From: Neoechinorhynchus agilis
Lineage: Eukaryota; Animalia; Acanthocephala
Assembly (NCBI GenBank): GCA_051530055.1
Contig: CM121341.1
Span: 6,302,784-6,366,783 of the forward strand
Reading direction: 5' to 3'
Length of the DNA: 64,000 nt
In this document: in pieces, positions 16,179-62,547 of the stretch
Layout of the letters: the number at the start of each line of letters is the position of its first letter
Numbering within the stretch: the first letter of the stretch is position 1
The notes under the pieces: model-generated
Told to the model about the DNA's origin: nothing
What the model saw: only the letters and a program-made list of their open reading frames with translations
Database searches by the model: none
Program-made: the position numbers and the translations under genes

Positions 16179-19100
16179 ATGCGGAAAAGTGGAGGACGTC
16201 TCGGTGGTGGTCAATCGTCGGTTTCATTGACTTCTTCAATTGGGGATGATTTGGACACTGCTTGCTGTAGTTCCCTTGACCGGAACAATGTTACTGCAAC
16301 GGTTCCCGGACGAACGTCGATTTTTGGCAATTCCAGACGAGTTCCTTCAACGGACGGCACTGGAGCTCAATCGATCCTCGATCGGATTCCGTTTTTGTCC
16401 ACGTTCGGATCAACGGCAACCGCTTCTTACATGACTCCTTCAACGGATCTTTACGACTATCACGTAACTTTCCTCGATGACACTCAACATCGGTTCACTT
16501 TAAAGGTTTTTCTTCTTTTTTATGAGACCTTTAAAGCCGCCATCCCTCTCTCTGTCACTTTAAAGCGTCAAAGTCCTGGTGGTGATTTGCTCAATCAGGT
16601 TTTCCAATACTTGAATCTCCATGAGTCACAATATTTTGGTCTTCTCGTTCCAACAACCACATCTTCAGATAATCCAGTGAGTCTTTGATTTGATTGAACA
16701 ATTTACACGTACCCTAGAAATGGCTTTGTCCTCAGAGAAATGTGAGAAAACAGCTCAAAGGTCACCACCAGCACCGAACAATCGATTATCCACTCGTGTT
16801 TAGAGTACGATACTTTCCACCAGCGCCAATTATGAACTATCTCAACGATCAGTTGACAAGGTTTTGTTGGTTTTAATTTCCAAATTTACGAGTTTCTTTT
16901 TAGGCACCTTTTTGTTCTTCAATTAAGACAAGACCTCAAAAATGGAAACCTTTACGCCTCACAACATACTCTTCTTCACTTATGTGCTCTATGTCTTCAA
17001 TGTAAGTCCAAACTTCTCTTTAATTGATCCAGAAAAATTTATCTCGAAAAACGATTCTAAAGAGTTCATTTTTGAGATAAAATCGCATTGTTGACCGCCA
17101 TTTCTTCGAGAGGTTTTCGGCTGAACTGTTCCCAATGAAGACAGAGGATTTTAAAGTTTAGTTGTTTTGAGAATGCGTCCATTTTTGAACAAAATCGCAT
17201 TGTTGACCGCCATTTCTTCGAGAGGTTTTCGGCTGAACTGTTCCACATGAAGACAGAGGATTTTAAAGTTTTTAATGCTCTTATTTGTTGAGTTGTTTTG
17301 AGATGGCGTCCATTTTTGAACAAAATCGCATTGTTGACCGCCATTTCTTCGAGATGTTTTCGGCTGAACTGTTCCACATGAAGACAGAACCCTAATGATT
17401 TTGCCATAGTCAGTTTCTGTTGATCATTGTCAAAGGCTTCCCGATTCACAAAAAAACACGATTAAAAAAGAGCGACTCTTGTCGAATTCGGTTCAATAGG
17501 CTGCACAAATATCTGAAATTAAAGACCTATGAATTCTCGCCAAACTGGTTTGAAATAGTTTCTTGTATTCTAATCAAATCACGTATAATTTATCATTCTC
17601 AATTGCGGTTTTACTCGAGTATTCTACAAATTATAGCTACAAATTGTCTGTTTGACATTTGTTTTTTTTGAACCCAGTGTTCTATTCTATATTCTTCTTT
17701 TTTTGTTGATTGAAAAAGTTTAGGTGACCGCGGTTCATACGACGGCCTCAATATTCGCAACAGTGGTATTCTTCGTTCGCTGCCAATTCCGGACGAGCGG
17801 ATCGAGACGCTTTTTGCGCCATCTCCTCAATGTATTCTCGAACTGACCACAAGATACAAACATTTACCAGTTACAATGAGTGTTGCGGACACCGAATGTG
17901 AGTTTTTGAACATTGTTGGTGAACACCTTGACATGTACGGCTACGAGTTTCATTCGGCCTACGTAAAAGTTTCAGCGTCTCCTTCATGTGAGAGCGTTGA
18001 AGTTCGTCTCGGTGTAGGACACGGAGGTCTAGTAATCTTTCAAGAATATCAGCGTATTTCAAGATTCGTTTGGAGTCGAATCACGAAGGTTTCCTACACT
18101 CACCGGCGACTCATTATCCGTCTGAGTACAGACTTACCAAACGATGAATATCCAGCTCGTCTTCTTTTATTGAGTTCCAAGGACGATCATGTGATTTGGC
18201 TTTACTTTCGTTCGTACACTTCGTGTCGGTCAGCCTACCAGGCATGTATTGAACAACACGCGTTCATGAAATCGCTGAGTGAACAACCAAAAAACGGAAT
18301 AGTCGGTATAGATGGGTCCAATTGTGGTGCTGGTGGTGCTTATAAAGATTCCATTTCAATTTTGCCAATTCAAAAGCATCCAAAGTGTCATTTGTTGCTA
18401 AACATGAGACAAATGCAATGTAATGTGAGTGCAGTACAACCTTCTGGTAGACCAAAGTGCCATACAATGGAATGCAATCCATTTCCACGTACTATTCTGA
18501 ACTCACCTATCCCGTTGCCGCCAAGATCCACTCACAATAATAATAGATCACCGACTCCGCCACTCCCAGCATCCAGAACGTCTTCTCAGTCCTCTTTGTA
18601 TGACATTCACTTTGAAAGCATCGATGCAAAAACATCGATTGATCATCTCAGAGATGGACTAGATTCCACGACAGGTTGCGAACTTTTATTTGAATTTGAA
18701 AATCTCTATCGAGCTAAGCCTGGGTATACGTTTGAGGCAAGCAAAAGACTAGATAATGTATCTAAGAACAGGTATAAGGATATTTTGGCTTATGATCAAA
18801 CACGAGTTAAGCTTAAGACATCAAGAAGAGTAGGCGACGAAAAGAGCGATTATATTAATGCCAATTAGATCGGAGAATGATATGTCCATTTACGAAAGTT
18901 GGATTTTTGTTGTAAAATGTTTGAAAGAAAAAACCTTTGATAAAATTGGAATTATTTCAATTTTGAGCCGTTTAAACTCTCTTTTTTTAGTGGCAAAATG
19001 GGGACAAATTTTGTCCCAAGAACTTTCCCCGTTATCCCTATAAATTTAAGATTTCAATTACTCAAGAGACATCATTCTTCGAAGAGTACGTCAGCATGCC

Positions 19101-19861
19101 TATATGTTCGACTTTAAACTTAACAAATCGATATATTGCAAGTCAAGGGCCTCTGGCATCTACATGCACTGATTTTTGGCAAATGATTTACGAACAGGAC
19201 ATTCGAATAATTGTTATGTTGACTACAGTGGTGGAGGGCGGTCGCATGAAATGCCACAAGTATTGGCCATCAAAATCTCAACGTTACTGTCAATTTGGAA
19301 GGTTTGAGATTCGACGGAAAAGCTGTCAACCTCACTTCGAATGCTACAATGGCGCATTGGATCATCGGCATCTTTCGTTGAGAGCTTATCCACATCGGCG
19401 TGATAGAGATATTGTGCAAGTTCAATGTAATTGGTGGCCTGATCATGGAGTTCCCACTCACGCCCACCATTTTCTCCAATTCCTTAACTCAATAAGGCAG
19501 CTTAGGGCAAGGTCCACTCAATCGCTACTGGTGCATTGCAGTGCAGGCATTGGACGGACTGGAGTGATGATTTTAGTCGAGACCGCTTTGTCTTTACTTG
19601 AACGCAACATGCCAATCAATCCGCTGGATATCGTGAAGCAGATGAGAAATCAGCGATATTGTATGGTTCAAAATAGCGTAAGTCTTTTAAAAATGGGAAA
19701 TTAGAAGTATGAATGTCAGAATTTCCTTCTAGGAACAATTCCGGTTTGCCTGTGAAGCCATTCTGCTCGCTTTTGACGAACGCACAAATTCGCATACGTC
19801 CACTAACCGAAACGAAATAATCAATCATCTCAGGATTGAAGATGACGACGACGAATGCTAG
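16179..19861 (+). CDS. FERM-domain non-receptor protein tyrosine phosphatase (PTPN3/PTPN4-like, no PDZ seen)
   Basis: FERM exons (YHVTFLDD, QYFGL, FRVRYFP, DMYG) plus PTP motifs NRYKDIL, DYINAN, YIASQGP, FWQMIYEQ, KCHKYWP, WPDHGVP, VHCSAGIGRTG and MVQN. It has GT-AG introns plus one non-GT-AG interruption at 18866-19086. Confidence 0.92.
17066..17390. repeat. ~120-bp tandem repeat (about 2.5 copies) inside a PTP intron
   Basis: aaaatcgcattgttgaccgccatttcttcgaga occurs three times. Confidence 0.85.
18866..19086 (+). other. Non-canonical TA-bounded, stem-closed insert (221 nt) in the PTP catalytic domain
   Basis: GCC AAT|TAGATCGGAGAATGAT...ATCATTCTTCGAAGAG|TAC GTC. There is a 12-bp stem with one G-U pair. 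Removal gives DYINAN-YVSMPI. Confidence 0.85.
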
Positions 19862-20246
19862 CGCTAGATGTATTCGTCCTTCGTGTACATTATAAATATT
19901 CTCTCACTAATAAGTCAATAATGCTACAAAAAAACTGTTTTTGTGAACTCTCTGTGAATGTTTTTTTGGTAGAACGATTATGTTTTTTTTTCGCTCTCAC
20001 TTCATTTACCTTAGCAATCTTATCGTCTTATTATAAACCCTTGAATTTCGCCAAATGCAATCGACGTTGTGAGAATTGAACATCTTCAAACTGCATCACA
20101 GATTGTCCAACTCAACCTATCTCAAACATCCAAACAAAATTTAGTCACTCGACTGTAAGGAGGCTGAAATGGAAGCTTTACGATGGTCGATTTAACGATA
20201 AACAAATAAGGTATATATTTATACGATTAAGGCTTTCGCTCGAAAT

Positions 20247-22723
20247 TCAATACTGAACGTCTTGTACTTTTGTGAACAGGATTACTTCATTGCTATAGTC
20301 TGTGAAAAAGAACCAAAAGAAGAGAGAAATCGAAAGCAATACAAGAGCATTGATATCACAAACCATGCCCCAAAACGGATCGCTATTGATCGATGTGTCT
20401 ATTGCGACCTCTACGTTGTTTTCATTCATTATTCCACTTTGATCTTCAATACCACAAATCCATTTGCCGGCCTCAATGATTGCTGATTTGAACGTCAACT
20501 TCGGTTTGCTAGGCTTGTTATCGTTCACATCATCTATATCATTCGAATGGACAGAGGAGTTTCTACCGTCAACGAGTGAAGGAATGCTTTCAAAACTTTG
20601 ACCTTGTTTATCTAGGGATTCTTGTTGTTTGGCCAAAGCAGCTTTAACATCGAAGTAGACGTCTGCTTTCTTGAAGAAGCCTGAAGCTGTTGGGATGCTA
20701 ATACGAGGGGTGTCGTTGAATCGATCAGGAAACGTTAGACCATGAATGCAGTCCATTGGAATTGGTTTCGTTAGAAGGCTCACAGCCCAGAGGACAATAG
20801 AGGCGAGAACGAATAGAACGATTCCAAAGTTTAGGTAGTGAAGCTGTACAACTGCTGGCATTGGATTGGGAAGTCCTGATGAACATGATGGTACCGTGTA
20901 CGAGAATTCCCATCCAAATCGAATGAGTCCTATGATAAATCCGGTAACAAGACACCAGAATCCACCTTCTTCATTCACTCGTTTAGACATGATTGCGAAA
21001 AAATAGAGTGCAGCAATCGGTGGAGCCAGAAAGCTAGTGACCGATTGAATGTAATCAAACAATCGACTGTTCTGAGACGCTTGAATTACAGGTATCCATA
21101 GGATACTGATCACGACTAATAAGAGTACAAACACTCGTCCGACAACCATTAGTTCCCATTCCCTTGCGTTTTTCCGAATTCTCTGATAAATGTCCACGGT
21201 GAATATTGTACTGCTACTATTGAAAATGGACGTTAGTGAAGACATGAGAGCGGCTATCATGACTGCTAACATCAGACCACGAATGGCTAATTTAGAGATT
21301 GTGAGTTAATTTTGTTCTAAACTAAAACAACACTATACCGTGTGGCATAATTCTAAGGACGAGAAGTGGAAAAGCTACGTCGTTGCATCCACCAGAACTG
21401 GAGCAAATGGCAGTACATATTTCCGATTGGGAACAGCCGATTTCGTCTTAAAACACAAGTGTATTTTGTGATAATTCTAAGGAGGACTACTAACTTGGCC
21501 ATAGAGTTCTGGACATCATTCCTGGAATTGCCATTATAAATAACGGAAGCAGCTTGATGTATCCAGCGAGCACGCATCCTCCTTTTACATGATCCATATT
21601 TTTTGCAGCTAAAGTCCTCTGCACAATCACCTGATCCGAGCACCAATACCACATAGCCGAGATGGTGAGTCCGAACATGGATATCCATGAAAGATCCGAG
21701 TCAAGTGGACGCATGAATGAGAAGTAATGCGGAGGAACTTCTCCACATTGGAGTTTTGTTAAGAGAGTTGTGTTCGCGATCGCAAATGGGTACACTTCCT
21801 TCAGATCCTGAAGACCGCCTACTCGACTAAATCCTGTTCGATAAGGAATAAACGAAAAATGGTAGTGACAAAACAATCATATACAAACCAATTCCCATCA
21901 ATATGAAGGCACCAATTATCATAATGACCGTCTGGACGAAATCGGTCCATATCACAGCCGTCAAACCACCTCCAATGGTGAACAATGCGGCCAATAGAAC
22001 CAAAAAAATAACGGAAACATAAATGTTCCAATTCAGAGCTTGTTCCAAGAATATTCCTCCCGCAAATAGATCCACCTTTTTTTGGTAGTATTTAGAATGA
22101 TCCTTAATGTTCGCTCTCCCTTCTTTTACTTACGGAAATTTTCGTGAAAATCGAAAGCAAAAGAGCGATAATAGCAAGAAGCAATCTGATTCGTTCTCCA
22201 CCGAATCTTCGCTTCAGAAATTCTGGCATCGTATATACCTAGTTGAAGGGAAAAGCTTGTTTTTATACTCTCTTTTTTTTTAAATTTAAACTTACACCTG
22301 CGTGAACGTATACGGGCGCATAAAGCCATCCAAGCATAAGAAGAGCCAATGCTGCCTGAAAAATAAAGTAGTTTCCAAAGGGACAGAGGGATGAAGCGTA
22401 CATTGACTTCGAAGCCAGCGATCGCTATGCCAGAATCAGCTCCTGATCCAGCGATTCCGACAAAATGACCACTTCCAATATTACTGGCAAATAAAGATGC
22501 GCCTACTAGGACGAAGTTCATATTTCTACCGGCCAAAAAGTATCCACCGAGACTTCCACGATTTTGGCATGATGACTAAAAAAAGGTTATGTTTCCGTGG
22601 AAAAGGCCAACAACAACACCATATACAAACCCATATTCCAAATCCAATAACGACCAGGAAATAGAGAACGAGAATCAAAATGTCTGACCAATGGAGACTT
22701 GTGTTAGCGAATCCAGTAGCCAT
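20247..22723 (-). CDS. Sodium/solute symporter SLC5A (SGLT/SMIT-like), 7 exons
   Basis: [69 protein letters not shown] and [16 protein letters not shown]. All introns traced are GT-AG. Confidence 0.95.
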
Positions 22724-22955
22724 TTTATCTTCTCTTTGTTAAAGAAAGGGTTTGAAATGATACGAGGAGTTCTCAAATGAGTTTTAAGCCGAAACAAGAA
22801 GGATGAGCAATCGACGTCTCATGGTGCTTACAACACAAATGTGTAATTCAGGCGGATTGTGTAGAGCTGTTCAACTAACGGAAAATGAGTAATCGTGAGT
22901 TTCGCTCTCTCTCTCACACACACTTTTTTTGATAACATTTAAACGGATATTTTTC

Positions 22956-24435
22956 TTAGAGCGATTGAAGCAGTTTGCGTGAGGAAAGTGTTAAACATGC
23001 ATCTTTTCGGCGGCAATCGCTCACTTTCATCCACTCAAGCGTGCTTTTAGGATGTCTAAATTGAACTAACGACAAAACGTTGTCGGGGTCGTCTTTGTAC
23101 CTATAAATGGTTGCTTCAATCCATGCATTGTCAGTATTTCGGGCGTCTTCAAGATATCCTTCATGAACGATTTCAGGTTTTTGTCTTCGAAGACAGTTTA
23201 GAACATGGATACGTTGACTCGTTGCCTCGGCGTCTTCGCCGCTACCACGTTCATCCGTTACATTTCGACAAATGTCACCCAATAAACGATCAGGAAGCGA
23301 TCCATTTCCATTGAATATCTCGTTTCGAATTTCAGGAAGGCGGCGAATATTCCCAGGCTCACCTTTATCTATCAGACATTCAAGAGTGTTCAAAGTAAAT
23401 GAACGAGTTATTATGAATATCGATAGATGATTTGGACCGAATCTCCACAAACGACCAAGACCCGTGTATCCCGTCTTCTCTGCTTTATTTAAAGGAAGAC
23501 CTGATTTGTCGTATTCTAATGGACCCATACAACTTGTTCTATCAACGTGCCGGGAAACATTTCGTCCAAAGTGAATATAAGTAACCGTATCCACTTTATC
23601 GAACGCAAATCGATCTACATATTTGTCGCAATCAATATCATCAGTGTCTTTGTGCTGAAATTCTATTCGGCGATCAAAATATCATGTCTATTATGAAAAA
23701 AAAGTCATGTTTTCTCGCTAAAAAACCTTTACTGAAATATGTGCGCGTTTTTTGGATTGATTTTGTTGAAAAAAGAATTCTAATGACCCAAGACTCGATT
23801 TTGATCGATGATAATTTAACGGGTGAGTAGACTTTTCCCGAATCTGAAACGGACGCTGGTGCAATCCCATTTTCTGCAATCATACAGTGCAGAAGATCTT
23901 CTTGTTTTCCCGAATCTTGTGCTGCTAAGACTTTCTCATTAGGTTCGAGTGATTTAAACGGTCTGTGGCGTTCTAAATGAGCACAAATACATTGCCCGAG
24001 TTTTCGCCGTACATCTTCGTCGATAATAATGTCAGCAGTCTTCTCGTCCTTTATAGTTAAAATTTCGCTTCCACGCAAATGCACTAGTAGTTGCATTTGC
24101 TCAATAGATGGTGGTGGTGGTGGTGGTGGTTCGTTTGTACAACTTTGGTTACTTTCACCAAAATCTTTTAAAGAGGATTCCTTCTCAACAAGAAGCCTTA
24201 ACAAATGCTCTCTCTCGGTCCTAAACACTGGATCGTCCGACGATATTTGACTCATTCTGAAGCAAATATCCCTCAGTGTGTCGATGCTGTGCTCACTATT
24301 CATCAGCAGCCTACAGCTATCCTCGAAAAATCCACCGGATCGAGCTGCTCTGAGCCGTTTTTGTAGACCGCTGTAATCGAACATGGACCGCCGGTTAGCT
24401 TCGAGATGTGGGGACGAGCTCACTCGTTTCATCAT
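22956..24435 (-). CDS. NUDT9-like (ADP-ribose pyrophosphatase fold) protein with an extended N-terminus
   Basis: KTGYTGLGRLWRFGPNH and GYLEDARNTDNAWIE match NUDT9/NUDT9-H conserved blocks. The Nudix box looks degenerate. Confidence 0.7.
23666..23813 (-). other. Candidate TA-bounded, stem-closed insert (148 nt)
   Basis: AAA T|TATCAT CGATCAAAAT...ATTTTGATCG CCGAA|TA GAA has a perfect 10-bp stem, and removal is in frame. A weak GT-AG alternative (23787-23655) also restores the frame. Confidence 0.55.
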
Positions 24436-24685: not shown

Positions 24686-26047
24686 TCAATTCCAAATTCG
24701 GATAATGGAATCCCAAGATCCAGTTGCGACAGCATTAGCTTTTCGGCTGACTCCTAAGCACTGGACGCGGTTCTCGTGTCCATGCAAATGATCTATACAT
24801 TGCTGTTTCAACACATCCCAAAGAACACAATCAAAGTTGTCGCATCCGCCGAACATGAGACGTCCACTCAATGAGAAACCCATGCTCGTAATGGGAATTC
24901 CTCCTGAGGAAATGAGAGGTGATGGAACGTGGTTTGTGTCTTGGTCGTACTTGAACTCCCCATTTAAACCGGACTCGGCGCTACGTTCACTTACAATCGA
25001 ATCAACTCTGTCGGATCGGTTCATCCGTTGTTGTTGTTGTTGTTGTTGTTGCTGGTGGTGGTGGTGGGTGGAACTTGTAAGTTTTGAGGCGCAGTTGGTG
25101 CTTGTGCAGCAATCAGTCGTTCGTTGATTTGCTGCTCTAGTTGACGATTCGTGGCCTTCGACGATAGTACCTGAAGGTACCCAATAGGTCCCGATTTTAC
25201 ACGCCGACCGCAAATCGACCAAGTGAACGAAACAATCATCTGAACCGGTGGCGATCGCGTTACCATTCGGGAAAAAAGCAGCGCAATTGATGTCTGTCTC
25301 ATGGAGATCGAACATGGTTAATTCACATCCTCGTTTGGTTCTCAGATCCCATAACTTCATGGACCGATCGGCGCTTCCAGTGGCGAAAACGTTTGAGGGC
25401 TCGTTTAAAGGTTGTACTCAAATGTGTTCCGCCCCTTCCACTTGAACACATTTCTAATGGGCTAAACAAAGACAATAAATTTCACTAATATGCCCAGTTA
25501 GCGTCCTGATTTGTTGACCGTTGTTAATATCCCAAAGACAGCATTTTCTATCAGAAGACGAAGTAAGCAGCTGATTTGAACAAACAAACTGTGCTCCTGA
25601 AACGAATCCATCGTGGCCGATTAACTCACGCACTAAACGACCGCTACTATCATCTTTTAATAAATAGACCGAAGCCGCATTATCCATTCCGGCTGACGCT
25701 ACAAGATCATTTTCGGCTCTAAAAGCGCATGCCATGGTCCATGCGCAATTAAGTTCGATTGCATGAGTTTTAGAGTGTTGATGAGTGTCCCAGACAATGA
25801 GTGTTGAGTCTTGACTGGCACTTAACAAGTGATCAGTTTGGGATGACCATGCTAAAGCGTACACTTTTGCAGCGTGGCCTTTCAATTTACATCGACTTTT
25901 TATTTTGAGTTTTTGAATGCATGAAACGCGTTCAGATGCCTTTTTAAGACTACAATCACGAATACCATCTCTGAGTTCTTGAATTCGTTCTTTTAAAATG
26001 AACAACTCGTGCTCGAGATCCGCCTCACTAATGCCAGTTGTCGACAT
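24686..26047 (-). CDS. Heterotrimeric G protein beta subunit (divergent, WD40 x7)
   Basis: [76 protein letters not shown]. One 48-nt interruption at 25417-25464. Confidence 0.93.
25417..25464 (-). other. Non-canonical TA-bounded, stem-closed insert (48 nt) in G-beta
   Basis: TGT T|TAGCCCATTAG AAATGTGTTC...GAACACATTT GAG|TA CAA. The insert contains two in-frame stops and a perfect 10-bp stem. Removal gives [13 protein letters not shown], matching the GHxxxVxxLxLxP spacing. Confidence 0.75.
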
Positions 26048-26893: not shown

Positions 26894-29800
26894 TTATTGA
26901 CCCTCTTCCATCTTCTTTTCGTTTTCACCGTTTGAGCTTTGTTCGTTGACCACAAGTGACTGGTTGCCGGAGATGGCGGCGGCGGCGGTGGCGGGAGATA
27001 AAGCAGTGATTGTGCTTGCATCTCGAGATGGCAGCAGATTCATGTAGCGTGACGACGACGTAGCTCCCGATTGAAATGCTGAAGAGTTGTGAGTTGCTCG
27101 AGATGCAAATAATGAAACATATTGATGGTGACCAAGAAGGTGATTTGTACTCATTGAGCTACCGGTGTTCGACGATACAGATTCATCGTCGTCTTCTGCA
27201 TCAAACATGTCCAAATCTCCACCCGAACTAATCGGTGTACCTGATACGAGATTCCGAAGATTACTTGAAGTAACTCGCATCGATGAAACTGAAGCTGACG
27301 ACCTAACCGTCTCCATTTGTCGAATCTTCTGCTCCCGAAATGATAAGACACCTTCGAGTGCTTCCTTTTCGCGTTGGAGTTTTCGTATCTTTCCTTTTAG
27401 AATAGACGCATTCTCTTCGTGGTCATCATTCACCTTCTTTAGTTGCCTTACGCGGCTAGCAACATTCTCAACTTGCTCGCGAGCATTCGTTGCAGCATTT
27501 TTCTCGTCTTCACATTTTAAAGTCAATTCTCGCAGTTTCTTCTCAGAACATCTTAAAGCTCGTGCCAGTCGTTGGCGCTCCTTTTGTTCCACATCCAATT
27601 GTTGTTCGAGAGAGGATAGTTTGCTTTCCAGGGACGATATTGTGAGCTTATTCCGATTGCGGTAGACTTCTTCAGCATCAGCCAACTTTTGCTTTAATTC
27701 CCGTAAAGCACGCTCGCTGGTTTCTTTACTCATCTCGGCCTTGTTCACATTAAGACGCTCCTGATTCAAATCATTGATCAGTTGGTCATGCTGCTGAACT
27801 AAAGCACGCAACCGTTCACTTAACTCACTTGTTTGTATACTTTCTTCGGCCAAATCTTCCTCTAACTCAGTAACCCGCGCCTCTAATCGCCGTTTCTCGT
27901 CATGCCACCGACCGTTCAACTCATCATTTCGAGCAATACTGACTTCCTGTCTAAAATCGTCCAACTCACTCGCCAAGGTCCGTTTAGACTTCTCAATTTC
28001 GTCGCGCTCGTCCTGGGTCTGTTGAAGAAGTTGCTCCAGAGAACAATACCTTTTCTCCCACTCTTTTGTGATATCGTCCTTAGTTGCTCGAGCTTCTTCC
28101 AATTCCCTTTTCAAATCCTTCAAAGCCATCGCAGCTCGTTTTATCTGTCTCTGTTGATCCTCCCGTACTCGCATAAGGTCACTAAGTTGAGCACTCGCAT
28201 CACTAATGTCTAATTCAAGCTTCTTTTGATGACTGATCGCAATCGACTTCATTTTTCGCTCCTCGTCCAACTCTGTGGCCATATCACGAACCTGCTTTAA
28301 AGCTGTTCTGTACCGGTCGTCACTGTTCTCATTTGCTTCAGCGACCTGCCGCTCTAATTGCTGCTTTAAAGCGTTCATATTAACTTCAAGTCGAAGCTTC
28401 GCGGTCTCAGCGTTACTTAAGTCATCTTCTAATTGCGAAACCTTTTGCCGCAATTCCTCACATGTAGACTCAAGAGTCCGTTTAGCCCTTTCAAGACCAC
28501 ATACACTCCGACCAACATCATCTTTGCCCGAGAGAGCATCATCCAACTCACTTCTCAACTGCTTGATTTTTGTCTCAGCTTGTTTTAGAGTATCATCTCT
28601 ATCTTGGAGATCGTATTGAAAACTAAGCAACCGGGTCTCTTTCTCCCGACATTCACGCTCAGCGTTTTCTAAGTCGGATCGCAACTTCTCTTGCAGAACC
28701 TTCTCGTCCAGAAGCTTCCTATCAATCTGCTTCTGACTTTTCTCAAGTGCATTACAATTGGACCGATAACGTTCCATCTCGACGCTAACATCAGCCAACT
28801 CATTCTGCAATTTGTTTCGGCTAGCTGTTGCTCTACTTAGCTGATCACTAAGATCTTGAATTTGAGATATAAGATTTTCTCTCTCTCTTTGAAAACCCCG
28901 CTTATGCTCGTCCAACTTCATCTCATACTCAGCTTGTCCTTGAATACGAACTTCATTGAGCGCATTTCCGAGCGACTGGCACTTCATCTCAAGCTTGGAA
29001 TATTCTTCGCATTTATCGGCATGAAGTTCACTTATAGAATCAATCTCAGATTCGAGCAAGCGATTTCTATTTTCTAACACCGATCGACTATCCAACTCAT
29101 CGTGTAAACGACTCTTCGTGTCTTCTAATTGTTCTCGACAAGATTGAAGGCAGTTTTGAATTTCAACCAACTTTGTTTCAGCGGCTGCTTGTGCTGCTTG
29201 AGCTCTCTCAGCTGTACGCCGAACTTGGCTGAGCTCGTTTTCACGCAGCAACTTCTGTTGTTCCACTTCATTCAGTGCTTCCAAATTCACATGTAGCTCA
29301 GTCTCCACAATCTTTAGCTTGCTCCGGAACGTATCACGAGCATTCTTAGCTTTAAGAAGCTCATCATCTCTCTCAGTCGCACGTTCAATCAATTCATTTT
29401 TTTCCTTTTGAAGATTTTGATTTAACCGCTGCAACTGGTCCATTTCGTCCGTCATTCGTTTCAGTTGCTCCGTAAAGCGAACCTTTACAGCCTGAACGGC
29501 CTCTACTCGAACCTCCTGCTCGCTCTCTAGTTTTCGCTTCAATTCATTGTATTCGGCCTCTCTTTTAGAATATTGAACCTGCATTGTGGCAGTTGTGTCC
29601 GAATGACCGGTTATCTCGTTTCGGAGAGCTTCATTCTCTTCCGACAAATCACGCCGGTCCGCTTCTGCCTTCATTCTCGCATCTTGCTCCGACTTAAGAT
29701 CCTCTTGAATATCCGTTAACTGTCCTTTAATATCTCGAATCTCACGTTGACGGGAACTTAACAATGTCATGATCTCCTCTAACTTAGCATTCGACAAACC

Positions 29801-46098: not shown

Positions 46099-46270
46099 TA
46101 GAAGAATTATTGTTTAGAAGTCTTCACCACGTAATTAATGAGTTTAATAGAGACGTTCTGCACACCCAGTCGGGTTCATTATCAATTCTATGATGAACCC
46201 GACGAGGTTCGCAGAACGTCTCTAATAAACTCATTAATTACGTGGTGAAGACTTCTAAACAATAATTCTA
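46099..46270. mobile_element. Solitary TA-flanked fold-back element related to the 386-bp satellite hairpin
   Basis: Near-perfect ~59-bp arms plus an 11-bp inner stem. It shares gacgttctg.gaacctc..gggttcatc and gtgaagactt.taa.c..aataattct with the satellite. Confidence 0.8.
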
Positions 46271-46366
46271 TAGTTTGAATCTCAACTTTCTGCACCAACA
46301 AAGAGTAATTTATAGCGTTGACTTTTTAAAAAATCTTCTGAAAAACGTATTCAGTATTTTATTAAG

Positions 46367-49171
46367 TCACGAACAGTTCAACAAAAATTGTTCCATGTCT
46401 GCACAAAAATCATTTGCTAGAGAAAAGAGTTGAACGTAGTTGGACACGAGATCCACGTCGTCCAGTGATTGTGACAGATCCCTCATTTCAAGGACTGATC
46501 GTTTCGCCTCCCTGAATGCTTCGGACCACGCACTTCGTAATGCTTTTACTTTGCTCTTTCGTCCCATTTGTCGCTCCTTTAAAATCTCTTTTAGACAAAA
46601 TATGCAAAGTGAATAACATTCCATACGAACGCTAAATCGATTCACAAAATCCTCCAAAGTGCTCACTTCATTTCTTGTGCTAACAGAACCAATTTCTATG
46701 AGTGCATCGTCGATTGTTTCACGGAGCATTGTTTCATTTGAGTGCGAGAGTAGATGGAGATGAATGAGAACTAAAGGATAGAATTCGACGAAAGGTTTGA
46801 ACATGCCGATCGGTAGTATATGAAGTGAACATGCATTGAGTTCAGTGAGTCTGGACTGCTCATCAGTAAATGAGTTTACTTTAAAGCGCAGATCGTCCAA
46901 TAAACTCACGTCCCTTTGGACGAAGAAACTTAATATTTGAAAACGAATGAGACAAATCTCATAAAAGACCCGATCGAACGTATTCTGTTTTTTCGAATAT
47001 TCAACATCGCAACAAAAGGGAGTCAACAAAGAGTTCTCGATGTGCTGGTTATCACTCACATCTACTTCGCGTAATCTATCACGTAAAATGTTCAGATCGA
47101 ATGAATGAATAAAATCCAGAGTCATGGACGTAACTATTAGACAGAAGCAATTGGTGGAATATCTCAAATCCCCCAACAATTCCGATAGTTTTACCAAGTG
47201 AACGAACGTGTTTAGGTCACCACTGTTTATTCCTTCATAGGCGGTAATCAATAATCGACGAATGTCCGACACTTGTCTCCCAATCGTCAAACGACTTTCT
47301 TCTATGTCACCGATAATCGATCAAAAAGGAACCAAATGCAATGATCGATGACGTAAATGGAAAGCAATATTCCGAATGGTGAGAGCGACGTTCACTTCAG
47401 CAGATTTACGTGAGTGCGGTCTTACAAATGATGCATATGAGAGGACGATTGGCAAAACGAATCGGCCAATCAGGCAGAACACCTCGAGGTTTTTGACGTT
47501 CAGCCGCGAGTACTCAGCGAAAGCGCGAACAATGTCCCCATAATGAACATAGGCGATTATAAGCATCGTATTGTAGTAGTGCCAAACACCACGCTCTTCT
47601 CCGACATTTAAACAAACCTCTTTTAAATGCTTAATAACGTCCAAGAGGACTTTACGGCCATTGTTTTGAGATGCGTAAATGTCCAATAAAAGACATTGCT
47701 TCCAGTCGTCGCCGCCGCCGCCCTTATGATCGCAGGATTTGTGCATTGAATCCTTCTTGGACGGTAATGACGGCTCTCCGTAAGCTTCCACAAACACTCT
47801 AGGACTTAACGTGGACACGACCAATGACACTTTCTCGTTTAGATCAGTTTTTGCGGGGGAAAATTGTGAAATGAGCAACGCTGCTATCTTTTCTGCCCTT
47901 TCAAGCTCTTCTCGTGCGATAAATCGCCATGTTTCGAAGTGAGTCGAACTTTAAGAGGACAACAAAAAAGAGGACATAAAACGGAAAAATCCACTAAAGC
48001 GTCGACCGGTTGTATTTTATCAATTTAATTCGTAATTTTGTTTACTAATCGACTAGATCCAACTATCGCCAAATGGAATTCTCAATAAGATCTAATGGTA
48101 CCGGCCAATATTTGACTTCACTTCTCTTAGTCAAACTCAGTCTATCCGTAGTTGAGATAAGAACTCTTTTCAGTGGCTCTATGGACCGTTCCAGCTCACT
48201 GATCGTCATCAATGCACAAGTTAAGACGTCTTTTTTAAACGAGGAATCGCTGTTTTTGGGCAAACTAAGACATTGTGAGGCCACATCAATTTTGTTTAAG
48301 GTGTCCACTTTAAGAGGAACTTCGAGTTTAAGACATTCTTTGATGGTTAGACAAGACGATTTTAAGAGAGTTTCATCTATCAATTGGCGAGAGCTGACGT
48401 TATTGCTTATCACTTCATCATGAGCATTGTTGATATTTGGTGAACATAGAAAACCGATAAGCTTAAATAGTTCGCTTTTACGACGATCTGAACGTTCGCA
48501 TAATCTCTTGGCCATGGCAAAGTGAGCACTTTTGAGGTTATCATCGCCAAAATGATCAGTAAAGTAACCGCTAATGTAAAAAGCAAGAATCATCCACAAT
48601 TCATTATGGGGTGACCTATCAAAACTAAACATTTTCAATGACAAAAGTCGCTGTTGTTCCAGCATTTCATGTTCGCGTCCTATTTTGGCCCAAAAAGGAC
48701 AGGAATTTCTCTTAAACTTTTAGCGTACGTCAAATACAGTTTCTCCGACACAAACCGATCCGTTTGGACGTTAGCGTACGTAAGTTCCAATAGTTTTATA
48801 AAGCACCGGACATCGTTGGACTCTGTAGAAATCACTTGCAACACATGAAAAATATTCTGTCTACTTCTTATCCATACGGCATCCTCGGAATAGACGGCTG
48901 GACTATTTAAGTACATTTCGTCGATGCGATCCAACGCAACGAAATAATCAGGTATTTTTGAACACCGAAGTAACGCTAAACAACGGAGAGCCTGAAGGAC
49001 TATCGGGAAATCATCCGGAGTGCTCGATCGATTAGATATCTTTTGGATAAGCTTATCCAAATCACCTAAAGCAATCCGAGGATTCGATTCCAGTGATGCA
49101 CATATTCTTCGGAGTTTCCGTTCAGCCGTATTGAAGCTACTCGCGATCCGGGCGAACAAATTGTCGTCCAT
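46367..49171 (-). CDS. Large unrecognised alpha-helical protein, four ORF segments
   Basis: Consecutive long ORFs separated by short hairpin-containing breaks at ~48690, ~48080 and ~47330. No family recognised. Confidence 0.65.
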
Positions 49172-50084: not shown

Positions 50085-50895
50085 ATGCGTGGTTTGAAAG
50101 GCAAATCGTCAGTAATAGAAAAGCTTCGTAAGCGTTTGAGGGGTACTCGTTTTCGGTGTATGAATCAAACGATTGACAATAGGAAATCAATTGAGAATTT
50201 AAGGGCATTTCAGGAGAATCCGGAGGAATTTCGTGAATACCACGCCCTATACAAGTCTCAAATGTCCAAATGGCCTTGTGGTGATCCTCTTCGCCTCATA
50301 ATATCTTGGATAGAATCTGTTCGATGCAAAGATCGTAAATTGATTGTTGCTGACTTGGGATGTGGTGACGCTCGACTCGCCACAGCATTGGATGGCAAAT
50401 GGAAAGGAAAGACTAAAATCGAAGTTCTGTCTTTTGATTTATGCGATGCGTTGAACGAGAAAGTTCAAGTCTGTGATATGAGAGATTTGCCTCTCGCAAA
50501 TGAAAGTATCGATGTTGTAGTGATTTGTCTCAGTCTTGTCGGAACAGATAGCCTTGATGCACTATGCAGCAGCGAGTTTGTGGTGTCTCGAGAGACAAAG
50601 ATCCACACACTCGTGAATAAGGGAAGTTAGCCGAGTTCTAAAGATGGGAGGTTGTTTTTTATTGATTGAACTTGCAAGTCGGTTTGTTGATCGGGAGTGC
50701 TCAAAGTCAAGAAAACAGCCATTTCCCTCCAACAAGAGATTGTGTCACCAAATCGAAAAACTCGGTCTTAGTCTTAAAAAGAAGGAACTTATCGACAATG
50801 ACTTTTTCTGGTTCTTTGTCTTTACCAAGAACAGTAAAATCAAACAAATACGGAATGTACAACCTCTTAAAAAATACCGATACAAGAAACGTTGA
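50085..50895 (+). CDS. RRP8: RRP8/nucleomethylin rRNA methyltransferase domain
   Basis: LRGTRFRCMNQ, FREYHALYKSQMSKWP, IVADLGCGDARLA, DVVVICLSLVGT, RVLKMGG..IELASRF and KYRYKKR. One 55-nt interruption. Confidence 0.9.
50563..50617 (+). other. TA-bounded, stem-closed insert (55 nt) in RRP8
   Basis: GCA C|TATGCAGCAG CGAGTTTGTGG...CCACACACTCG TGAA|TA AGG GAA has an 11-bp stem with one mismatch. Removal gives DALREVSRVLK. Confidence 0.7.
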
Positions 50896-52938: not shown

Positions 52939-53645
52939 TCTTTCAATAATTTCACGATACTTTGAATATTAACGGTTTATATTTATAAATTCATTGTTTT
53001 GTTTGGCGTCGAGACACTCGGGTCGTTTTGTATCTCGGCGCAGGATCTGGTCAAGCAATTGTCTAAGAATTTTTATGGTTACAAAGCTCCACATCCGAGA
53101 TAAATGATTTTTTCGATTAAAGACGTTCTGTGAACCTCACCGTGGGTTCATCTTTTTAATCAAAGAAATCATTTACCGCGGATGTGAAGACTTGTAACCG
53201 TAAATAATTCTTCCAATTAAATAGCCCCCCCCCGGTATCTCCTCTTCGCATATCGACAGTCGACAAAATTAAATGCTGAAAAAGAAAATTAAGCTGATTG
53301 CCACAATTTACCCTTTCGAAATATTTCAATAATAATTTCGCAATACTTTGAATATTAGCGTTTTATATTTATAAATTCATTGTTTTGTTTGGCGTCGAGA
53401 CACTCGGGTCGTTTTGTATCTCGGCGCAGGATCTGGTCAAGCAATTGTCTAAGAATTTTTATGGTTACAAAGCTCCACATCCGAGATAAATGATTTTTTC
53501 GATTAAAAAGACGTTCTGGGAACCTCACCGTGAGTTCATCTTTTTAATCGAAAAAATCATTTATCTCGGATGTGAAGACTTGTAACCGTAATAATTCTTC
53601 TCATTAAATAGCCCCCCCCGGTATCTCCTCTTCACATATCGACAA
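52939..53645. repeat. ~386-bp hairpin satellite, about 1.8 units
   Basis: Same unit as 1-771 and 37479-38712. Confidence 0.95.
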
Positions 53646-57579: not shown

Positions 57580-58526
57580 TTATTTCTCCAAACTGTCTAG
57601 ATATCGATTCCAATCGCGCCTATAAGTCTGAACGAACTTCCTTCCGTAATTCAAAGTGACAAAGTAAAAGGATCGAAACTGTTGTTTGTAAACGGGAAAC
57701 AATTGGTTAAATTGGCTTGCGTGAATTCCCAAAATGTTTGCCAATATTCCCAGATGAATATCTTCGAAATAGCATTCACAAGTGTTATATTTTTGGTAGA
57801 AGAGTTTGGCGTAATCACTCGTGAGGACGACAGCTCCTCCGGTTACATAATTCGGATAGTGAGAATACGGGTAATCATTTGTCGATATGAACCATTTTGA
57901 GAAAAAATTCCGTCGTGGTTTGGACGCCTTATAAACGTATCCTCCATAGATGGATTTATTTATCGTTGATTTGAACTTATTAAATTCTCGGGGGAAAAGG
58001 AGGTAGTCATCATCGATAAAAAGGCAAAGAGAGTGCTGATCATTAGATTGGGCGCACAATCGAATGGCTTGAATGTTCTTTTGGCAGATTGTAGTGTACA
58101 AGTCTAATAGATGACATTTTAACAAGAGCCAAGAGAAAATATCATATTTTTTTGTAAAACTTGTGAATCGAGAACATCGTTGTAGTATTCGCTTTCATTT
58201 GCTAGTTTTATCATTGTCTTGATATTCTTTGATCGTCCAATCAGAAACTTTGCGCTTGCAAAATCACCTTGAGTGGTAAGGTGTCGTAAATACGTATTTC
58301 TGATTATTTTGCGATTCTCAAAATTATCCACAAATGATTTAACAAAGATTTTCAGACTCAATGAACTTCCATTGAGTGTCAAGGGTTCGTTTGAGAGAAT
58401 TTGGAAGTCTTCAAGTGGCGTTTGTCTGATAAACTCGAATATTCCGATCGATTCACAGAGTAAAAAAATCAAAAAGAAGCACAGAATGATTCCAATTGAT
58501 TTGATAAATCGATGTCCGTGCGGCAT
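57580..58526 (-). CDS. Beta-1,3-galactosyltransferase family (GT31) protein
   Basis: N-terminal TM, RKIIRNTY, ESEYYNDVL, FIDDD, YPNYVTGGAVVLT and FEDIHLG. One 50-nt interruption. Confidence 0.85.
58107..58156 (-). other. Non-canonical TA-bounded, stem-closed insert (50 nt) in the GT31 gene
   Basis: GTT T|TACAAAAAAAT ATGATATTTT...AAAATGTCAT CTAT|TA GAC has a 10-bp stem with one G-U pair. Removal gives NDVLDSQVL-DLY. I found no nearby in-phase GT-AG pair. Confidence 0.8.
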
Positions 58527-59014: not shown

Positions 59015-61609
59015 ATGCATGACCATTACCAATGCCATCAGCAGCAGCAGCAGATTTCTGCTCCGCCAATAATGCGTCCCAAGTCTCTGTTGGAAATCCC
59101 GGTACCACCGCCAATGGACGATTCTCAACAGATCGTAAGTCCGAACGGATTAAAACTCCGAGAAACTCTGTACCGTCTCATGATGAGTCAACTCGCACTC
59201 GATGGACATCAACACGTCGCTTCGTCCCTCGCAACGATGATGAACGCCAAACCCCTGTGTCCACCGTCTAACCGTCTATTTCAGTGGTTCCCAAACCTCT
59301 TTTTTCGGCCCTCGGAACGATGAAAAAAACTTGATCACGGAAGGGTCAAAAAACCTTGAGCATGTGGACCCTGCCCACTGACTCTCTCCACGGAAGGGTG
59401 CAAAAACCTTGAGCATGGACCCTGCACACGGAAGGGTGAAGAAACCTTGCCCACTGACTCTGCCCACTGACTCTCCCCACCGAAGGATGAAAAAACCTTG
59501 CCCACTGACTCTCCCCACCGAAGGGTGAAAAAACCTTGCCCACGGACCCTGCACACGGAAGGGTGAAGAAACCTTGCCCACTGACCCTGCCCACTGACTC
59601 TCCCCACCGAAGGATGAAAAAACCTTGAGCATGGACCCTCCCTTCCGGAAGGGTGAAGAAACCTTGCCCACGGACCCTGCCCACGGAAGGGTGAAGAAAC
59701 CTTGCCGACTGACCCTGCCCACGGAAGGGTGAAGAAACCTTGCCCACTGACCCTGCCCACTGACTCTCACCACCGAAGGATGAAAAAACCTTGAGCATGG
59801 ACCCTCCCTTCCGGAAGGGTGAAGAAACCTTGCCCACTGACCCTGCCCACTGACTCTGCCCACCGAAGGATGAAAAATCCTTGCCCACGGACCCTGCCCA
59901 CGGACCCTGCCCACAGGTGAAAAACTTGCATACTATTTTCTCTTTTTTTCATATTTAACATTGTGCGAACCCGATTTCCAATGTTGTCCAGGGACCCAAA
60001 ATTAATTTTCCACTGACCCCTTGAATGATTGTGTTGAACCCTTCTAAGCAGCCTTAATAAATAGGCTTGACGAAAGCAAAGGGGATTTAACAAAAGAATT
60101 TAACTCAATTTTAGTCACCGTCCTAAAAGAAAGAAAAACACTTTGGGAACCACTGGTCTATTTAATCTCGTTACTGCTGGCTTACGAGCAGAGGGTGCTT
60201 TAGCGAGTGATGGCGAACCAATCAACGATTCTCTTCTTCTCGGTGGGCGGTCCACTTCCGGTCTAAATTTCGAATATCAAGCGGATGCCAGGGTTGAGAG
60301 TAGCGATACAAGTAAATATGAGACTTGCTACGTTACGGCTCATAAGGCTCCGTGTAGAGCTGCTGCCTTTGATCACACTGGAAGCGTGATCGCCACTGGT
60401 GCAGTTGACGCTTCCATTAAAATCCTGGACGTTGATCGTATGATTGCTAAGGGTGAACTACAGGCAACCGGAGTTGGTGGTCCCGGAGTCGAAAATGAAA
60501 GCGTAGAAAACCATCCAGTCGTAAGAACTCTTTATGACCATGCTGATGAAATCACTTATTTGGAGTTTCATCCTCGTGCACAAATCCTGGCTTCAGCTTC
60601 TAAGGATTATACTATTAAGTTCTTTGAGTATGCGAAACAAGCTTCTAAGAAAGCTGTCAAAACTTTACAGGAAGTTGAGTATGTTCAATGTTTTAGCTTT
60701 CATCCATCGGGAGAATATATGATCGTTGGAACTTCTCATCCTACTCTTCGGCTGTATCACGTCGAAACCTGTGATTGCTGGATCTCACCGAATCCTAAAG
60801 ACCAACACAACGAACCCATTATCCGATTGATTGCTTTAGTTTTTTTGATCGCGTCTTCGCACAGTCGATTTCAAAAAAACTGCAAAGCCTCGAGAACTTA
60901 GTTACGTTATTGCGATAGTAATCCGCTCCCCTCTATATTTTTTAAATGAAAGATCTTCCACTGTTGACATATTTCAACATGTTTTTTTGTATCCGATGAT
61001 TCCCACAACTCCAAACTAAGAATATTCTTTTTTTTCTTGGAAATATCCCTGTTTTAGCTAGCTGTTTAAATCTTTTTTTTTTGGATAACTGAAGCAATCA
61101 ATCATACGGCAGCCACTTACTCATCGAATGCACGGGTTTATGCGTCGGCTTGTGAGGGAGGTGTTATAAAGCTATGGGATGGAGTTAGCAACAAATGCAT
61201 CAATACATTCACTGACACTCACAGCGGCCAAAGTGTGAGTTCGTTACAATTTACAAGGAATTCCAAGTACCTTTTATCGTCAGGGAAAGACAGTCAGGTT
61301 CGTTTGTGGGATATTAGTGCAGGACGCTGCCTGATTAGTTATACCGGGGCTGGTCTTATGGGAAAACAAGAGTACCACGCGAATGCCGTGTTCAATCATA
61401 CCGAAGATTTCGTTCTTTTCCCAGACGAACGAACAATCAGCCTCTGTTGCTGGAACGCTCGCAACGCAGAACGGCACAATCTTCTGTCTCTTGGGCACAA
61501 TTCTAGCGTCCGATGGATCGCACATAGTCCCGTATATCCTGCTTTTCTCTCCTGCAGTGATGATTACCGAGCGAGGTTCTGGTGCAGACCTGCATCAAGT
61601 CTCACCTAA
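59015..61609 (+). CDS. CSTF1: Cleavage stimulation factor 50-kDa subunit (CstF50)
   Basis: [71 protein letters not shown] and [10 protein letters not shown]. Both interruptions are inverted-repeat inserts. Confidence 0.95.
59282..60155. mobile_element. Non-autonomous hAT (Buster/Charlie-type) element, 874 bp, inside the CSTF1 coding sequence
   Basis: Perfect 14-bp TIR CAGTGGTTCCCAAA / TTTGGGAACCACTG and an 8-bp TA-centred target-site duplication GTCTATTT (59274-59281, 60156-60163). The interior is a minisatellite with no transposase. Confidence 0.9.
59335..59915. repeat. Composite minisatellite inside the hAT element
   Basis: Shuffled short motifs: gaagggtgaagaaaccttgccca, ctgaccctgccca and ggaccctgc. 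Confidence 0.9.
60820..61104 (+). other. Non-canonical TA-bounded, TIR-closed insert (285 nt) in a CSTF1 WD repeat
   Basis: CCC AT|TATCC GATTGATTGCTTTAGTT...AACTGAAGCAATCAATC A|TA CG has a 17-bp stem with one G-U pair. Removal gives DQHNEPITAATYSS, the same length as human DQHTDAICSVNYNS. Confidence 0.85.
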
Positions 61610-61692
61610 CAAAAAACTTCTTAAGAATTGATTCTGGACGTTATGCGTTCGGCTTTTTTTGTAAACACAACTACAATTATTCTTTTTTAAAT

Positions 61693-62547
61693 TTAAAGAA
61701 ATGAACCTTGGATCAATTTTCGATCAATCATCTCTTGCAGAAGCCAAGACAGAGCAGTCGAAGGAATCCATTGATGCCTCCATTTATTTACTTCTTCGTA
61801 TCCAGCATAAGCTGCAAGAGCCACTTCCCGCTCTTCGAAATCCAACTGCCTTATCAAACTTTCACGCCCTAGAAACCCACATCCAATCGTGGCCTCAATC
61901 ATTGCTAATGTACGTTTTATCAATACCTTTTTTTTTGTTCCTCAAAAACACGACACAATAGTAAAGTCGCTTACCTCGAGAATTTCTTTTCCTATTTGGA
62001 TGATATCGAATCGCTGTACATTTTCGAGCAGAAATACACCTACTGCGAAATAGATGCTCGGCACTCGAACGTTTGGAATGTCGAGTTTTTTGCGAGATAA
62101 TATTAGGTTTTCGGTTGCGTGTCTTAATTCATCCGGACAGAATATAATGACAGCGTGTTCATCTGACGAATTGCAGATTCTCAGTGAGTTTACTGAACTC
62201 TATAGAACTGTTCCGACGCTTCTACCACGATCGCACACTTTCTTTTTAAGAAAACATTCTTAAATTTGGACAAATTTTAGATTTTATTATATAGGAAACG
62301 GGGGGGGGTCGTTCGCTCCAGAAATGCGAGAACCTACAATTTAAAGAGACTGCGCTAACCAGCATGGCATTACATAGTGCTTTCCTTTCTCCACTGGAAT
62401 AAAAGATTGTTCGTCGTCGTCCTCCTCCTCCTCTAAGCTGATTTCGGGCATTTCAACTGTTGTCTTAGCGAAAATCAAGGCCTGCGAAGTAATTATAGAC
62501 TTCAAATCGTAGTATTCATCATCGAGAAAATAGAGAACATTTTCCAT
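61693..62547 (-). CDS. GINS3: GINS complex subunit Psf3-like
   Basis: EYYDLKSII, HYVMPCWLAQSL, YFAVGVFLL, LIKRTLAMIE and QLDFEEREV..KWR. It has one GT-AG intron plus one ambiguous stem-closed break. Confidence 0.7.

Follow-up and report, generated by a model that had tools for sequence, protein, structure and literature searches.

The 64,000-nt stretch analysed here, hereafter the window (contig CM121341.1 of assembly GCA_051530055.1, positions 6,302,784 to 6,366,783 of the forward strand), comes from Neoechinorhynchus agilis, an eoacanthocephalan parasite of fish with a genome of 46.2 Mb (PMC12690905). Its assembly is a hybrid of Oxford Nanopore Technologies (ONT) and Illumina data from pooled worms, with haplotig purging, and the GenBank gene models were produced by BRAKER with mRNA-seq evidence (PMC12690905). 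Inside 45 kb of the window we found seven inserts, every one of them with in-frame stops or a frameshift, in six conserved genes: a FERM-type protein tyrosine phosphatase (PTP; 221 nt), a G-beta-like WD40 gene (G-beta; 48 nt), a rhodopsin-family G-protein-coupled receptor (GPCR; 447 nt), the RRP8 methyltransferase (55 nt), a GT31 galactosyltransferase (50 nt) and the normally single-copy CSTF1, which holds two (285 and 882 nt). Roughly 20 genes are annotated in the window, and the affected ones are 6 named genes. An original prediction, made by a model from the sequence letters, had named the seven inserts, and all were present at exactly the lengths it gave. They carry transposon hallmarks, namely terminal inverted repeats together with target-site duplications, and the whole looks like a second, non-GT-AG class of introns in N. 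agilis.

Anatomy of the seven inserts

Coordinates are those of the plus strand of the window, with one register given for each insert. For the terminal stems, the first 28 nt of an insert were compared with its last 28 nt and the best ungapped Watson-Crick pairing was scored, with dinucleotide-preserving shuffles as the null model. In the PTP gene, which lies on the plus strand, the insert at 18866-19086 interrupts the catalytic domain between two copies of TA, and its arms (TCGGAGAATGAT and ATCATTCTTCGA) stand 4 nt from each end (p=0.004). The G-beta insert (25417-25464, minus-strand gene), also bounded by TA on both sides, has a perfect 10-bp stem formed by AAATGTGTTC and GAACACATTT with gaps of 9 and 3 nt (p=0.002). 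The GPCR gene, likewise on the minus strand, is interrupted between transmembrane segments TM4 and TM5 by a TA-flanked insert (39762-40208) with a 10-bp core repeat, AAGTGAACCT and AGGTTCACTT, which reaches about 15 bp with degenerate positions (p=0.004). In RRP8, on the plus strand, the TA-flanked insert at 50563-50617 has a stem (CGAGTTTGTGG and CCACACACTCG) with one U-C mismatch and gaps of 8 and 4 nt (p=0.004), and in the minus-strand GT31 gene the insert at 58107-58156 is flanked by TTA on both sides and has a stem (ATGATATTTT and AAAATGTCAT) with one G-U pair and gaps of 9 and 4 nt (p=0.014 with Watson-Crick pairs only, 0.006 with G-U pairs). CSTF1, on the plus strand, carries the 882-nt insert (59274-60155) in its N-terminal domain, between perfect 8-bp copies of GTCTATTT and with a perfect 14-bp terminal repeat, CAGTGGTTCCCAAA (14/14), that has CAGTGG ends. 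The 285-nt insert (60820-61104) falls in a WD40 repeat of the same gene between two TA copies, and its 17-bp repeat, with 16 positions matching (GATTGATTGCTTTAGTT and AACTGAAGCAATCAATC), stands 3 and 1 nt from them (p=0.002).

The arms are thus 10-17 bp long and lie 1-11 nt from the TA, and the stem scores of the seven inserts range from 7.5 to 14.5 (p=0.002-0.014 each), which agrees with the predicted inverted repeat near the ends of every insert. The same prediction had each insert flanked by a duplicated TA. This holds for six of the seven (TTA in GT31), but the 882-nt insert has an 8-bp direct repeat, and for this reason we do not class it with the TA elements. The ends of hAT elements are short terminal inverted repeats starting with CAG or TAG. 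The 882-nt insert has both the 8-bp target-site duplication and a terminal inverted repeat starting with CAG, and so has the anatomy of a non-autonomous hAT-like element rather than a TA element; its core consists of tandem repeats of about 38 nt (59336-59914). The other six have the TA duplication, the terminal inverted repeats and the small size (48-447 nt) of Stowaway/Tc1-mariner miniature inverted-repeat transposable elements (MITEs). Open reading frames (ORFs) in the four longer inserts (882, 447, 221 and 285 nt) gave no match to a Pfam domain. When the register is started at A, the insert ends read AG..GT in PTP and G-beta, AT..AT in RRP8 and the 285-nt insert of CSTF1, AC..TT in GT31 and AA..AT in GPCR. 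On the sense strand of G-beta, RRP8, GT31 and GPCR the gap between junction and stem is 8-9 nt at the 5′ side and 3-4 nt at the 3′ side, an asymmetry that had been predicted and that we also observed, with the reservation that in GPCR it is partly accounted for, and so reduced, by the degenerate longer repeat.

Exact removal, annotation and ordinary introns

Deletion from repeat to repeat produced a single long ORF in all seven cases, and exact removal had the top profile score in all six genes, by a slight margin in G-beta. In PTP it restores DYINAN/YV and the Pfam Y_phosphatase domain in one stretch at 234.2 bits, whereas the nearest GC-AG alternative reached 223.6 (gain 10.6). For RRP8 the Methyltransf_8 score was 186.2 bits after TA-to-TA deletion and 178.1 with a 46-nt GT-AG intron (gain 8.1), for GT31 the Galactosyl_T score was 91.5 bits, shifted junctions giving 81.2 and 87.4 (gain 4.1-10.3), and for GPCR the 7tm_1 score was 43.6 bits against 38.2 with a 453-nt GT-AG intron (gain 5.4); each of these four TA-to-TA products gives one continuous Pfam domain match. 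The comparison of G-beta with the PDB G-beta1 protein gave 238.9 bits for TA-to-TA deletion and 237.3 for a 51-nt GT-AG intron, a difference of 1.6 bits, and its junction is ambiguous. That TA-to-TA deletion restores frame and conserved motifs, as had been proposed for every insert, therefore stands for the six TA inserts, G-beta by those 1.6 bits, but not for the 882-nt insert, which is joined at its 8-bp copies.

The two inserts of CSTF1 were analysed together with a profile of 24 homologues, against which we scored 20 gene models: exact removal, shifts of ±3 and ±6 nt at the four boundaries, and in-frame GT-AG alternatives. Exact removal was the best of the 20 (674.1 bits), ahead of the shifted boundaries (659.8-669.0 bits), the annotated GT-AG model (655.6 bits) and the other GT-AG models (651.0 and 624.0 bits), and at the 285-nt insert the GT-AG alternatives were 23-50 bits below exact removal. 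Long ORFs are retained on both flanks of every insert, and the catalytic motifs HCSAGIGRTG (PTP), DLGCGDA (RRP8) and DDD (GT31) are kept. Across the exact removal the joined 40-mers read GCGATTATATTAATGCCAATTACGTCAGCATGCCTATATG in PTP, TGAAATTTATTGTCTTTGTTTACAACCTTTAAACGAGCCC in G-beta, AGTTACAAAACTAGACTGTTTAGCAAACCCAATCAGTCAG in GPCR, AACAGATAGCCTTGATGCACTAAGGGAAGTTAGCCGAGTT in RRP8, TGTTCTCGATTCACAAGTTTTAGACTTGTACACTACAATC in GT31, and CCTGTGTCCACCGTCTAACCGTCTATTTAATCTCGTTACT and GACCAACACAACGAACCCATTACGGCAGCCACTTACTCAT at the 882-nt and 285-nt inserts of CSTF1. The repaired CSTF1 protein has 95% identity to the N. agilis hypothetical protein ACOME3_001437, the next matches being rotifer proteins at about 57%. 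Since the protein collection contains one N. agilis CSTF1, and a protein search for RRP8 returned no second N. agilis copy at E<=1e-25 (the sole match was the window's own shortened product), an intact paralogue that would mark either copy as a pseudogene is not evident there. A homologue search with the repaired GPCR, aimed at paralogous loci, gave zero matches.

The public annotation breaks at all seven inserts, and the genes that bear them are split, shortened or missing. PTP is split at the 221-nt insert into products of 607 and 236 aa, and G-beta at the 48-nt insert into products of 197 and 224 aa. RRP8 is annotated as a 181-aa product with its stop inside the 55-nt insert, and GPCR by its last 150 residues, the N-terminal half being unmodelled. 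GT31 is missing. The 351-aa CSTF1 model is built with a GT-AG pair that lies within the 882-nt element, and its reading frame continues into the 285-nt insert, where it meets a stop. The neighbouring SLC5 gene is annotated as a single 701-aa product despite seven introns with weak sites.

As controls for the terminal stems we used 20 GT-AG introns of 40-59 nt from the same window (7 of SLC5, 10 of a Sec1/SCFD1-like gene, and 1 each of PTP, GT31 and Psf3). The SLC5-family transporter gene (20250..22738, minus strand) has seven GT-AG introns of 46-58 nt with weak 5′ sites, and the Sec1-family (SCFD1/SLY1-like) gene (1964..4418, minus strand) has ten of 40-59 nt, all without terminal stems. The 20 canonical introns scored 3-7, with zero overlap with the inserts (Mann-Whitney p=4.2e-5), and the three inserts of 48-55 nt alone also differed from equally short canonical introns (p=0.003). 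There are therefore two classes of interruption in the window: the hairpin inserts, which make up about a quarter, and the ordinary GT-AG introns of 40-59 nt, from which they are distinct. Taken by themselves, TA flanks carry little weight: of 10 canonical introns, 3 had an in-frame TA..TA alternative of their own at most 3 nt away (background 30-40%). When the window was scanned without bias for ORF-joining TA..TA deletions, 1912 solutions emerged, of which 31 passed the stem filter; most of these were spurious, and the scan was rejected as too noisy a statistic.

We also enumerated all in-frame, stop-free GT-AG and GC-AG solutions around each insert. At the PTP insert, the GT31 insert and the 285-nt insert of CSTF1 none of these preserves the conserved residues (the D..D.Y motif in GT31), and these three cannot be GT-AG introns. 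The caveat that some inserts have GT-AG alternatives proved justified for three others, where we found credible ones: GTTTAG..TTTGAG in G-beta (51 nt), GTTTGT..AAG in RRP8 (46 nt) and GTTTAA..TAG in GPCR (453 nt). U12-type AT-AC introns were rejected, as an /ATATCC 5′ end or an AC 3′ end fits no register, and so were mirtrons, the stems being only about 10 bp long.

Ordinary introns of this window have weak 5′ sites such as GTTTGT, GTACGC and GTATAG, and several have an A-run before the AG (AAAAAAAG) in place of a pyrimidine tract (e.g. 22076-22133, 3036-3094 and 61927-61974). Splice-site recognition may be generally relaxed in N. agilis.

Further candidates and neighbouring sequence

The unnamed gene at 46-49 kb, on the minus strand, contains two further candidates. 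One, of 51 nt (47303..47353), had been listed in the original prediction; it lies between TA copies and has an 8-bp palindromic stem (ATCGATCA and TGATCGAT), and an in-frame GT-AG intron of equal length, GTCATC..ACATAG, can be read by eye at the same place. The other, an additional segment of 142 nt (47930..48071), is flanked by the 7-bp direct repeat TGGCGAT, and when it is deleted two ORFs, of 216 and 202 codons, become one. It is precisely at this segment that the annotation divides the gene, into products of 322 and 423 aa, and the segment may be a third kind of insert. A 148-nt insert had also been proposed for a NUDT9-like gene (22956-24435, minus strand), and we did not locate it within this gene. 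The match to NUDT9 is to PDB 1q33 (E=2.6e-13), with a poorly aligned Nudix-box region; the gene is annotated as one 471-aa product with about 64 nt of intron, and it has either a degenerate box, as in the NUDT9-H domains of TRPM2, or a read-through of an unrecognised in-frame insert.

About 3.7 kb past the right end of the window (18683-19139 in the coordinates of the flanking locus) there is a TA..TA segment of 457 nt whose 11-bp terminal repeats, TAAATCGAAGT and ACTTCGGTTTA, start at the TA itself. It lies in an annotated 245-aa gene without a Pfam domain, and deleting it fuses two ORFs, of 190 and 63 codons.

Outside genes, a palindromic, MITE-like repeat family occupies 1-490, 37479-38713 and 53065-53600, with the arm CTTCACATCCGCGATAAATGATTTTTTCGATTAAAAAGA and a TA 5 nt outside both arms; it is partly arranged as a 387-nt tandem array, and its sequence is unrelated to the genic inserts. 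Long near-perfect hairpins with arms of 25-80 nt lie in non-coding sequence at 46103-46269, 11922-12050, 12867-13048, 1210-1300 and 62769-62826. The genome of N. agilis is rich in hairpin elements outside genes too. There are also four large tandem arrays with 95-98% unit identity, at 4508-6272 (unit of 148 nt), 7231-8884 (181 nt), 13428-16083 (158 nt) and 33397-34947 (42 nt). The 42-nt array shows a strong positive GC skew, and its open frames are probably non-coding; it adjoins a gene for a myosin-II-type heavy chain (26894-33142, minus strand) that is a single uninterrupted ORF of about 2085 codons, while the neighbouring genes have an intron every 150-300 nt. An Rfam search of the window gave zero matches.

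Proposed routes of removal and known systems

We propose that non-autonomous DNA transposons have inserted inside coding exons of N. agilis. Most of the inserts would be Stowaway/Tc1-mariner-like (TA duplication) and one hAT-like (8 bp), and the three of about 50 nt would be remnants that shrank in situ. The element and one copy of the target-site duplication would be removed exactly before translation, and the genes would stay functional. On balance, the most likely route in our view is that the insert leaves the pre-mRNA as a non-canonical intron; its terminal inverted repeat would pair into a helix, and the two copies of the direct repeat would thereby come close to each other. The machinery would probably be a permissive U2-type spliceosome, as in the larvacean Fritillaria borealis, in which Henriet et al. 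reportedly described non-canonical, MITE-derived introns in 2019; a distinct activity that reads structure, of the sort suspected in euglenids, is less probable. We infer the removal itself, its RNA level and its machinery from what is seen in the DNA. The RNA level is favoured because the same anatomy of direct and inverted repeats occurs in RNA-seq-validated introns of Amoebophrya and euglenids, because the U2 spliceosome removes such introns in the animal F. borealis, and because the N. agilis transcriptome is more BUSCO-complete than the genome (54.9% versus 47.1% for the metazoan set, 71.0% versus 58.4% for the eukaryotic set; PMC12690905), as one would predict for transcripts free of interruptions that gene finders are unable to model. 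Being unique and in part degenerate, the short inserts would have resided for long without decay of the host genes.

Several observations weigh against this proposal of RNA-level removal. The duplication and the 14-bp repeat of the 882-nt insert are perfect and the long inserts look young, so that they are possibly recent disruptive alleles. A blastn search of the 64-kb window found no second copy of any insert, and membership in a repeat family is therefore unproven. Beyond the TA, the inserts have no terminal dinucleotides or internal splice signals in common, so a spliceosome would need another cue. The imperfections of the stems had been predicted to be mostly G-U pairs in the sense RNA, but a G-U-tolerant score was better on the sense than on the antisense strand in three inserts, worse in two and equal in two, so that no sense-strand bias was seen. 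The RNA fold of the whole insert is no better than that of shuffles in G-beta (z=+0.5) and GPCR (z=-0.1), and modestly better in RRP8 (z=-1.7), GT31 (z=-2.1) and the 285-nt insert of CSTF1 (z=-2.1); the 142-nt candidate has no terminal hairpin and again folds no better than shuffles (z=+0.7). A transcript-derived N. agilis protein did not turn up in the CSTF1 or RRP8 protein searches, the RNA-seq of N. agilis dating from 2025. Pipelines of the BRAKER kind discard hints from non-canonical junctions, and for this reason the broken annotation cannot separate retention of the inserts from their non-canonical removal.

It is also conceivable, if unlikely, that the inserts are not removed at all and represent recent or polymorphic null alleles retained by the assembly of pooled worms, or pseudogene copies. 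The pool of worms and the haplotig purging would fit this, as would the shortened products in the annotation, the perfect duplication and terminal repeats of the 882-nt insert and the nearly perfect ones of the 285-nt insert. However, it would have to accommodate seven insertions that hit six conserved genes, CSTF1 twice, in a span of 45 kb, with long ORFs and catalytic motifs intact on both flanks. The degenerate and unique inserts of 48-55 nt point to long residence in host ORFs that have not decayed, and both the lack of an intact second N. agilis CSTF1 or RRP8 in the protein collection and the higher BUSCO completeness of the transcriptome argue in the same direction. We regard as similarly doubtful that a subset of the inserts (G-beta, RRP8, GPCR and the 51-nt candidate) are ordinary GT-AG introns with a chance hairpin. 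This explanation is a serious one for the first three because GTTT-type 5′ sites are truly used in this genome, GTTTGT being the 5′ site of two bona fide SLC5 introns; in-frame alternatives exist, the difference in G-beta is just 1.6 bits, and 30% of canonical introns have a TA..TA alternative nearby. Yet the stems of the three inserts score 10 (G-beta), 8.5 (RRP8) and 10 (GPCR), above the maximum of 7 among the 20 canonical introns, and the profiles favour TA-to-TA deletion by 8.1 bits in RRP8 and 5.4 bits in GPCR. The RNA-seq-guided annotation did not adopt the alternatives in G-beta and RRP8 and left the N-terminal half of GPCR unmodelled, although it modelled the seven weak-site introns of SLC5. 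An intron of 453 nt would have roughly eight times the usual length, and the remaining inserts (PTP, GT31 and both in CSTF1) would not be accounted for.

Paramecium internal eliminated sequences (IESs) are bounded by TA, depend on PiggyMac for their exact excision, have Tc1/mariner ancestry, occur in coding sequence and become very short after decay. Precise DNA excision of a comparable kind, acting at the TA duplication in nuclei that are somatic or transcriptionally active, appears to us still less probable than the preceding two explanations. The N. agilis inserts do resemble IESs in the duplicated TA at both ends, the transposon origin, the coding location and the wide range of sizes down to about 50 nt, and the missing splice-site consensus would be natural for a DNA-level process. 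In contrast, their 5′ ends do not fit the TAYAGYNR consensus (they read TAGATCGG, TAGCCCAT, TAAAACCA, TATGCAGC, TACAAAAA and TATCCGAT), duplications of 8 and 7 bp are unsuited to a TA-specific excisase, and a clean assembly from whole-worm DNA contains the inserts. Paramecium, where the process acts on DNA, is a ciliate whose germline and somatic nuclei are separate; we found nothing comparable for acanthocephalans, and programmed DNA elimination is unmentioned for Acanthocephala in the review searched. More broadly, we think it improbable that the removal of the insertions in N. agilis bypasses conventional splice-site recognition. If it does, it may be an RNA excision that measures the helix, similar to that of euglenids and possibly independent of the spliceosome, with cuts about 10 nt from the helix on the 5′ side and about 4 nt on the 3′ side, or else a programmed, precise elimination of DNA at the duplicated target sites, in that case the first to be reported from Gnathifera. 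Finally, a hybrid ONT and Illumina assembly can be suspected of assembly or polishing artefacts, but these do not yield terminal inverted repeats and exact duplications whose removal restores conserved proteins, and the window is 100% identical to the deposited chromosome in both segments compared, of 15.0 and 20.6 kb (35.6 kb in all); we hold this last explanation to be extremely improbable.

In animals, introns of this kind have so far been documented in one tunicate lineage only. Our full-text literature search found non-canonical or transposon-derived introns unreported for Acanthocephala or rotifers, the word "intron" is absent from the acanthocephalan genome papers and the review that we text-searched for it, and the supplement of the N. 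agilis genome paper does not mention the insert-bearing genes of the window. If transcripts confirm the removal, N. agilis would be a second independent animal lineage, and a protostome, that tolerates exonic insertions of DNA transposons through their exact removal, with a bearing on the origin of introns from transposons and on the limits of splice-site relaxation. Convergence with Fritillaria, Amoebophrya and euglenids would then be open to study in public data. Gene finders restricted to GT-AG introns break or miss every affected gene in the window. Unmodelled introns may therefore account in part for the massive gene loss claimed for acanthocephalans from BUSCO (PMC12256650, PMC12690905) and for entries in lists of drug targets, and unmodelled inserts may have inflated the published gene-loss estimates for N. 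agilis.

The nonconventional introns of euglenids resemble the N. agilis inserts in several ways: the borders are variable and non-canonical, the junctions have duplication-like repeats, and a helix close to the ends draws these together and stands at unequal distances from the two junctions. They differ in the pairing of CAG with CTG at +4..+6 and -8..-6, which is not seen in N. agilis, where the stems have other offsets and unrelated sequences; euglenid introns are excised as circles after conventional splicing. The introners of Micromonas and Aureococcus (Huff et al. 2016; Gozashti et al. 2022) are likewise DNA transposons that become introns, with the element and one copy of the duplication being removed, but they carry or create GT-AG sites and form large, near-identical families.

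In F. borealis, fewer than 10% of the introns are GT-AG and the main classes end in AG/AC and AG/AT (Soo et al. 2026, PMC13326754); the U2 spliceosome removes the non-canonical introns, and the U2AF subunits are duplicated (PMC13326754, PMC11282704). As in N. agilis, transposon-derived inserts with inverted repeats and target-site duplications, and without GT-AG ends, interrupt the genes of an animal. F. borealis has lineage-specific intron positions and a boundary motif, YAY, that is repeated at both ends and contains TA. The N. agilis inserts lack the AG/AC or AG/AT termini with YAY, and a pyrimidine before the 5′ TA (7/7) is the sole shared feature. N. agilis further differs in the GT-AG majority of its window (20 versus 7-8) and in being a protostome parasite. 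Since the defining end motifs of Fritillaria, of euglenids and of Paramecium IESs are all missing, the inserts, which would work in a similar way, are not assignable to any one system. The introner elements of the dinoflagellate protist Amoebophrya (Farhat et al. 2021) have inverted repeats of 8-20 nt that pair the ends of RNA-seq-validated introns, and direct repeats of 3-5 nt over the exon/intron boundaries, and a hairpin has been proposed to join the exon ends (PMC7789003). They occur in repeated families, and the direct repeats in N. agilis are of 2 nt (3 in GT31) or 8 nt. In both organisms, inverted repeats (10-17 bp in N. agilis) and boundary-overlapping direct repeats are found without conserved terminal dinucleotides and alongside canonical introns. 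The introner elements of Amoebophrya are the closest match in anatomy, and Fritillaria is the closest biological setting.

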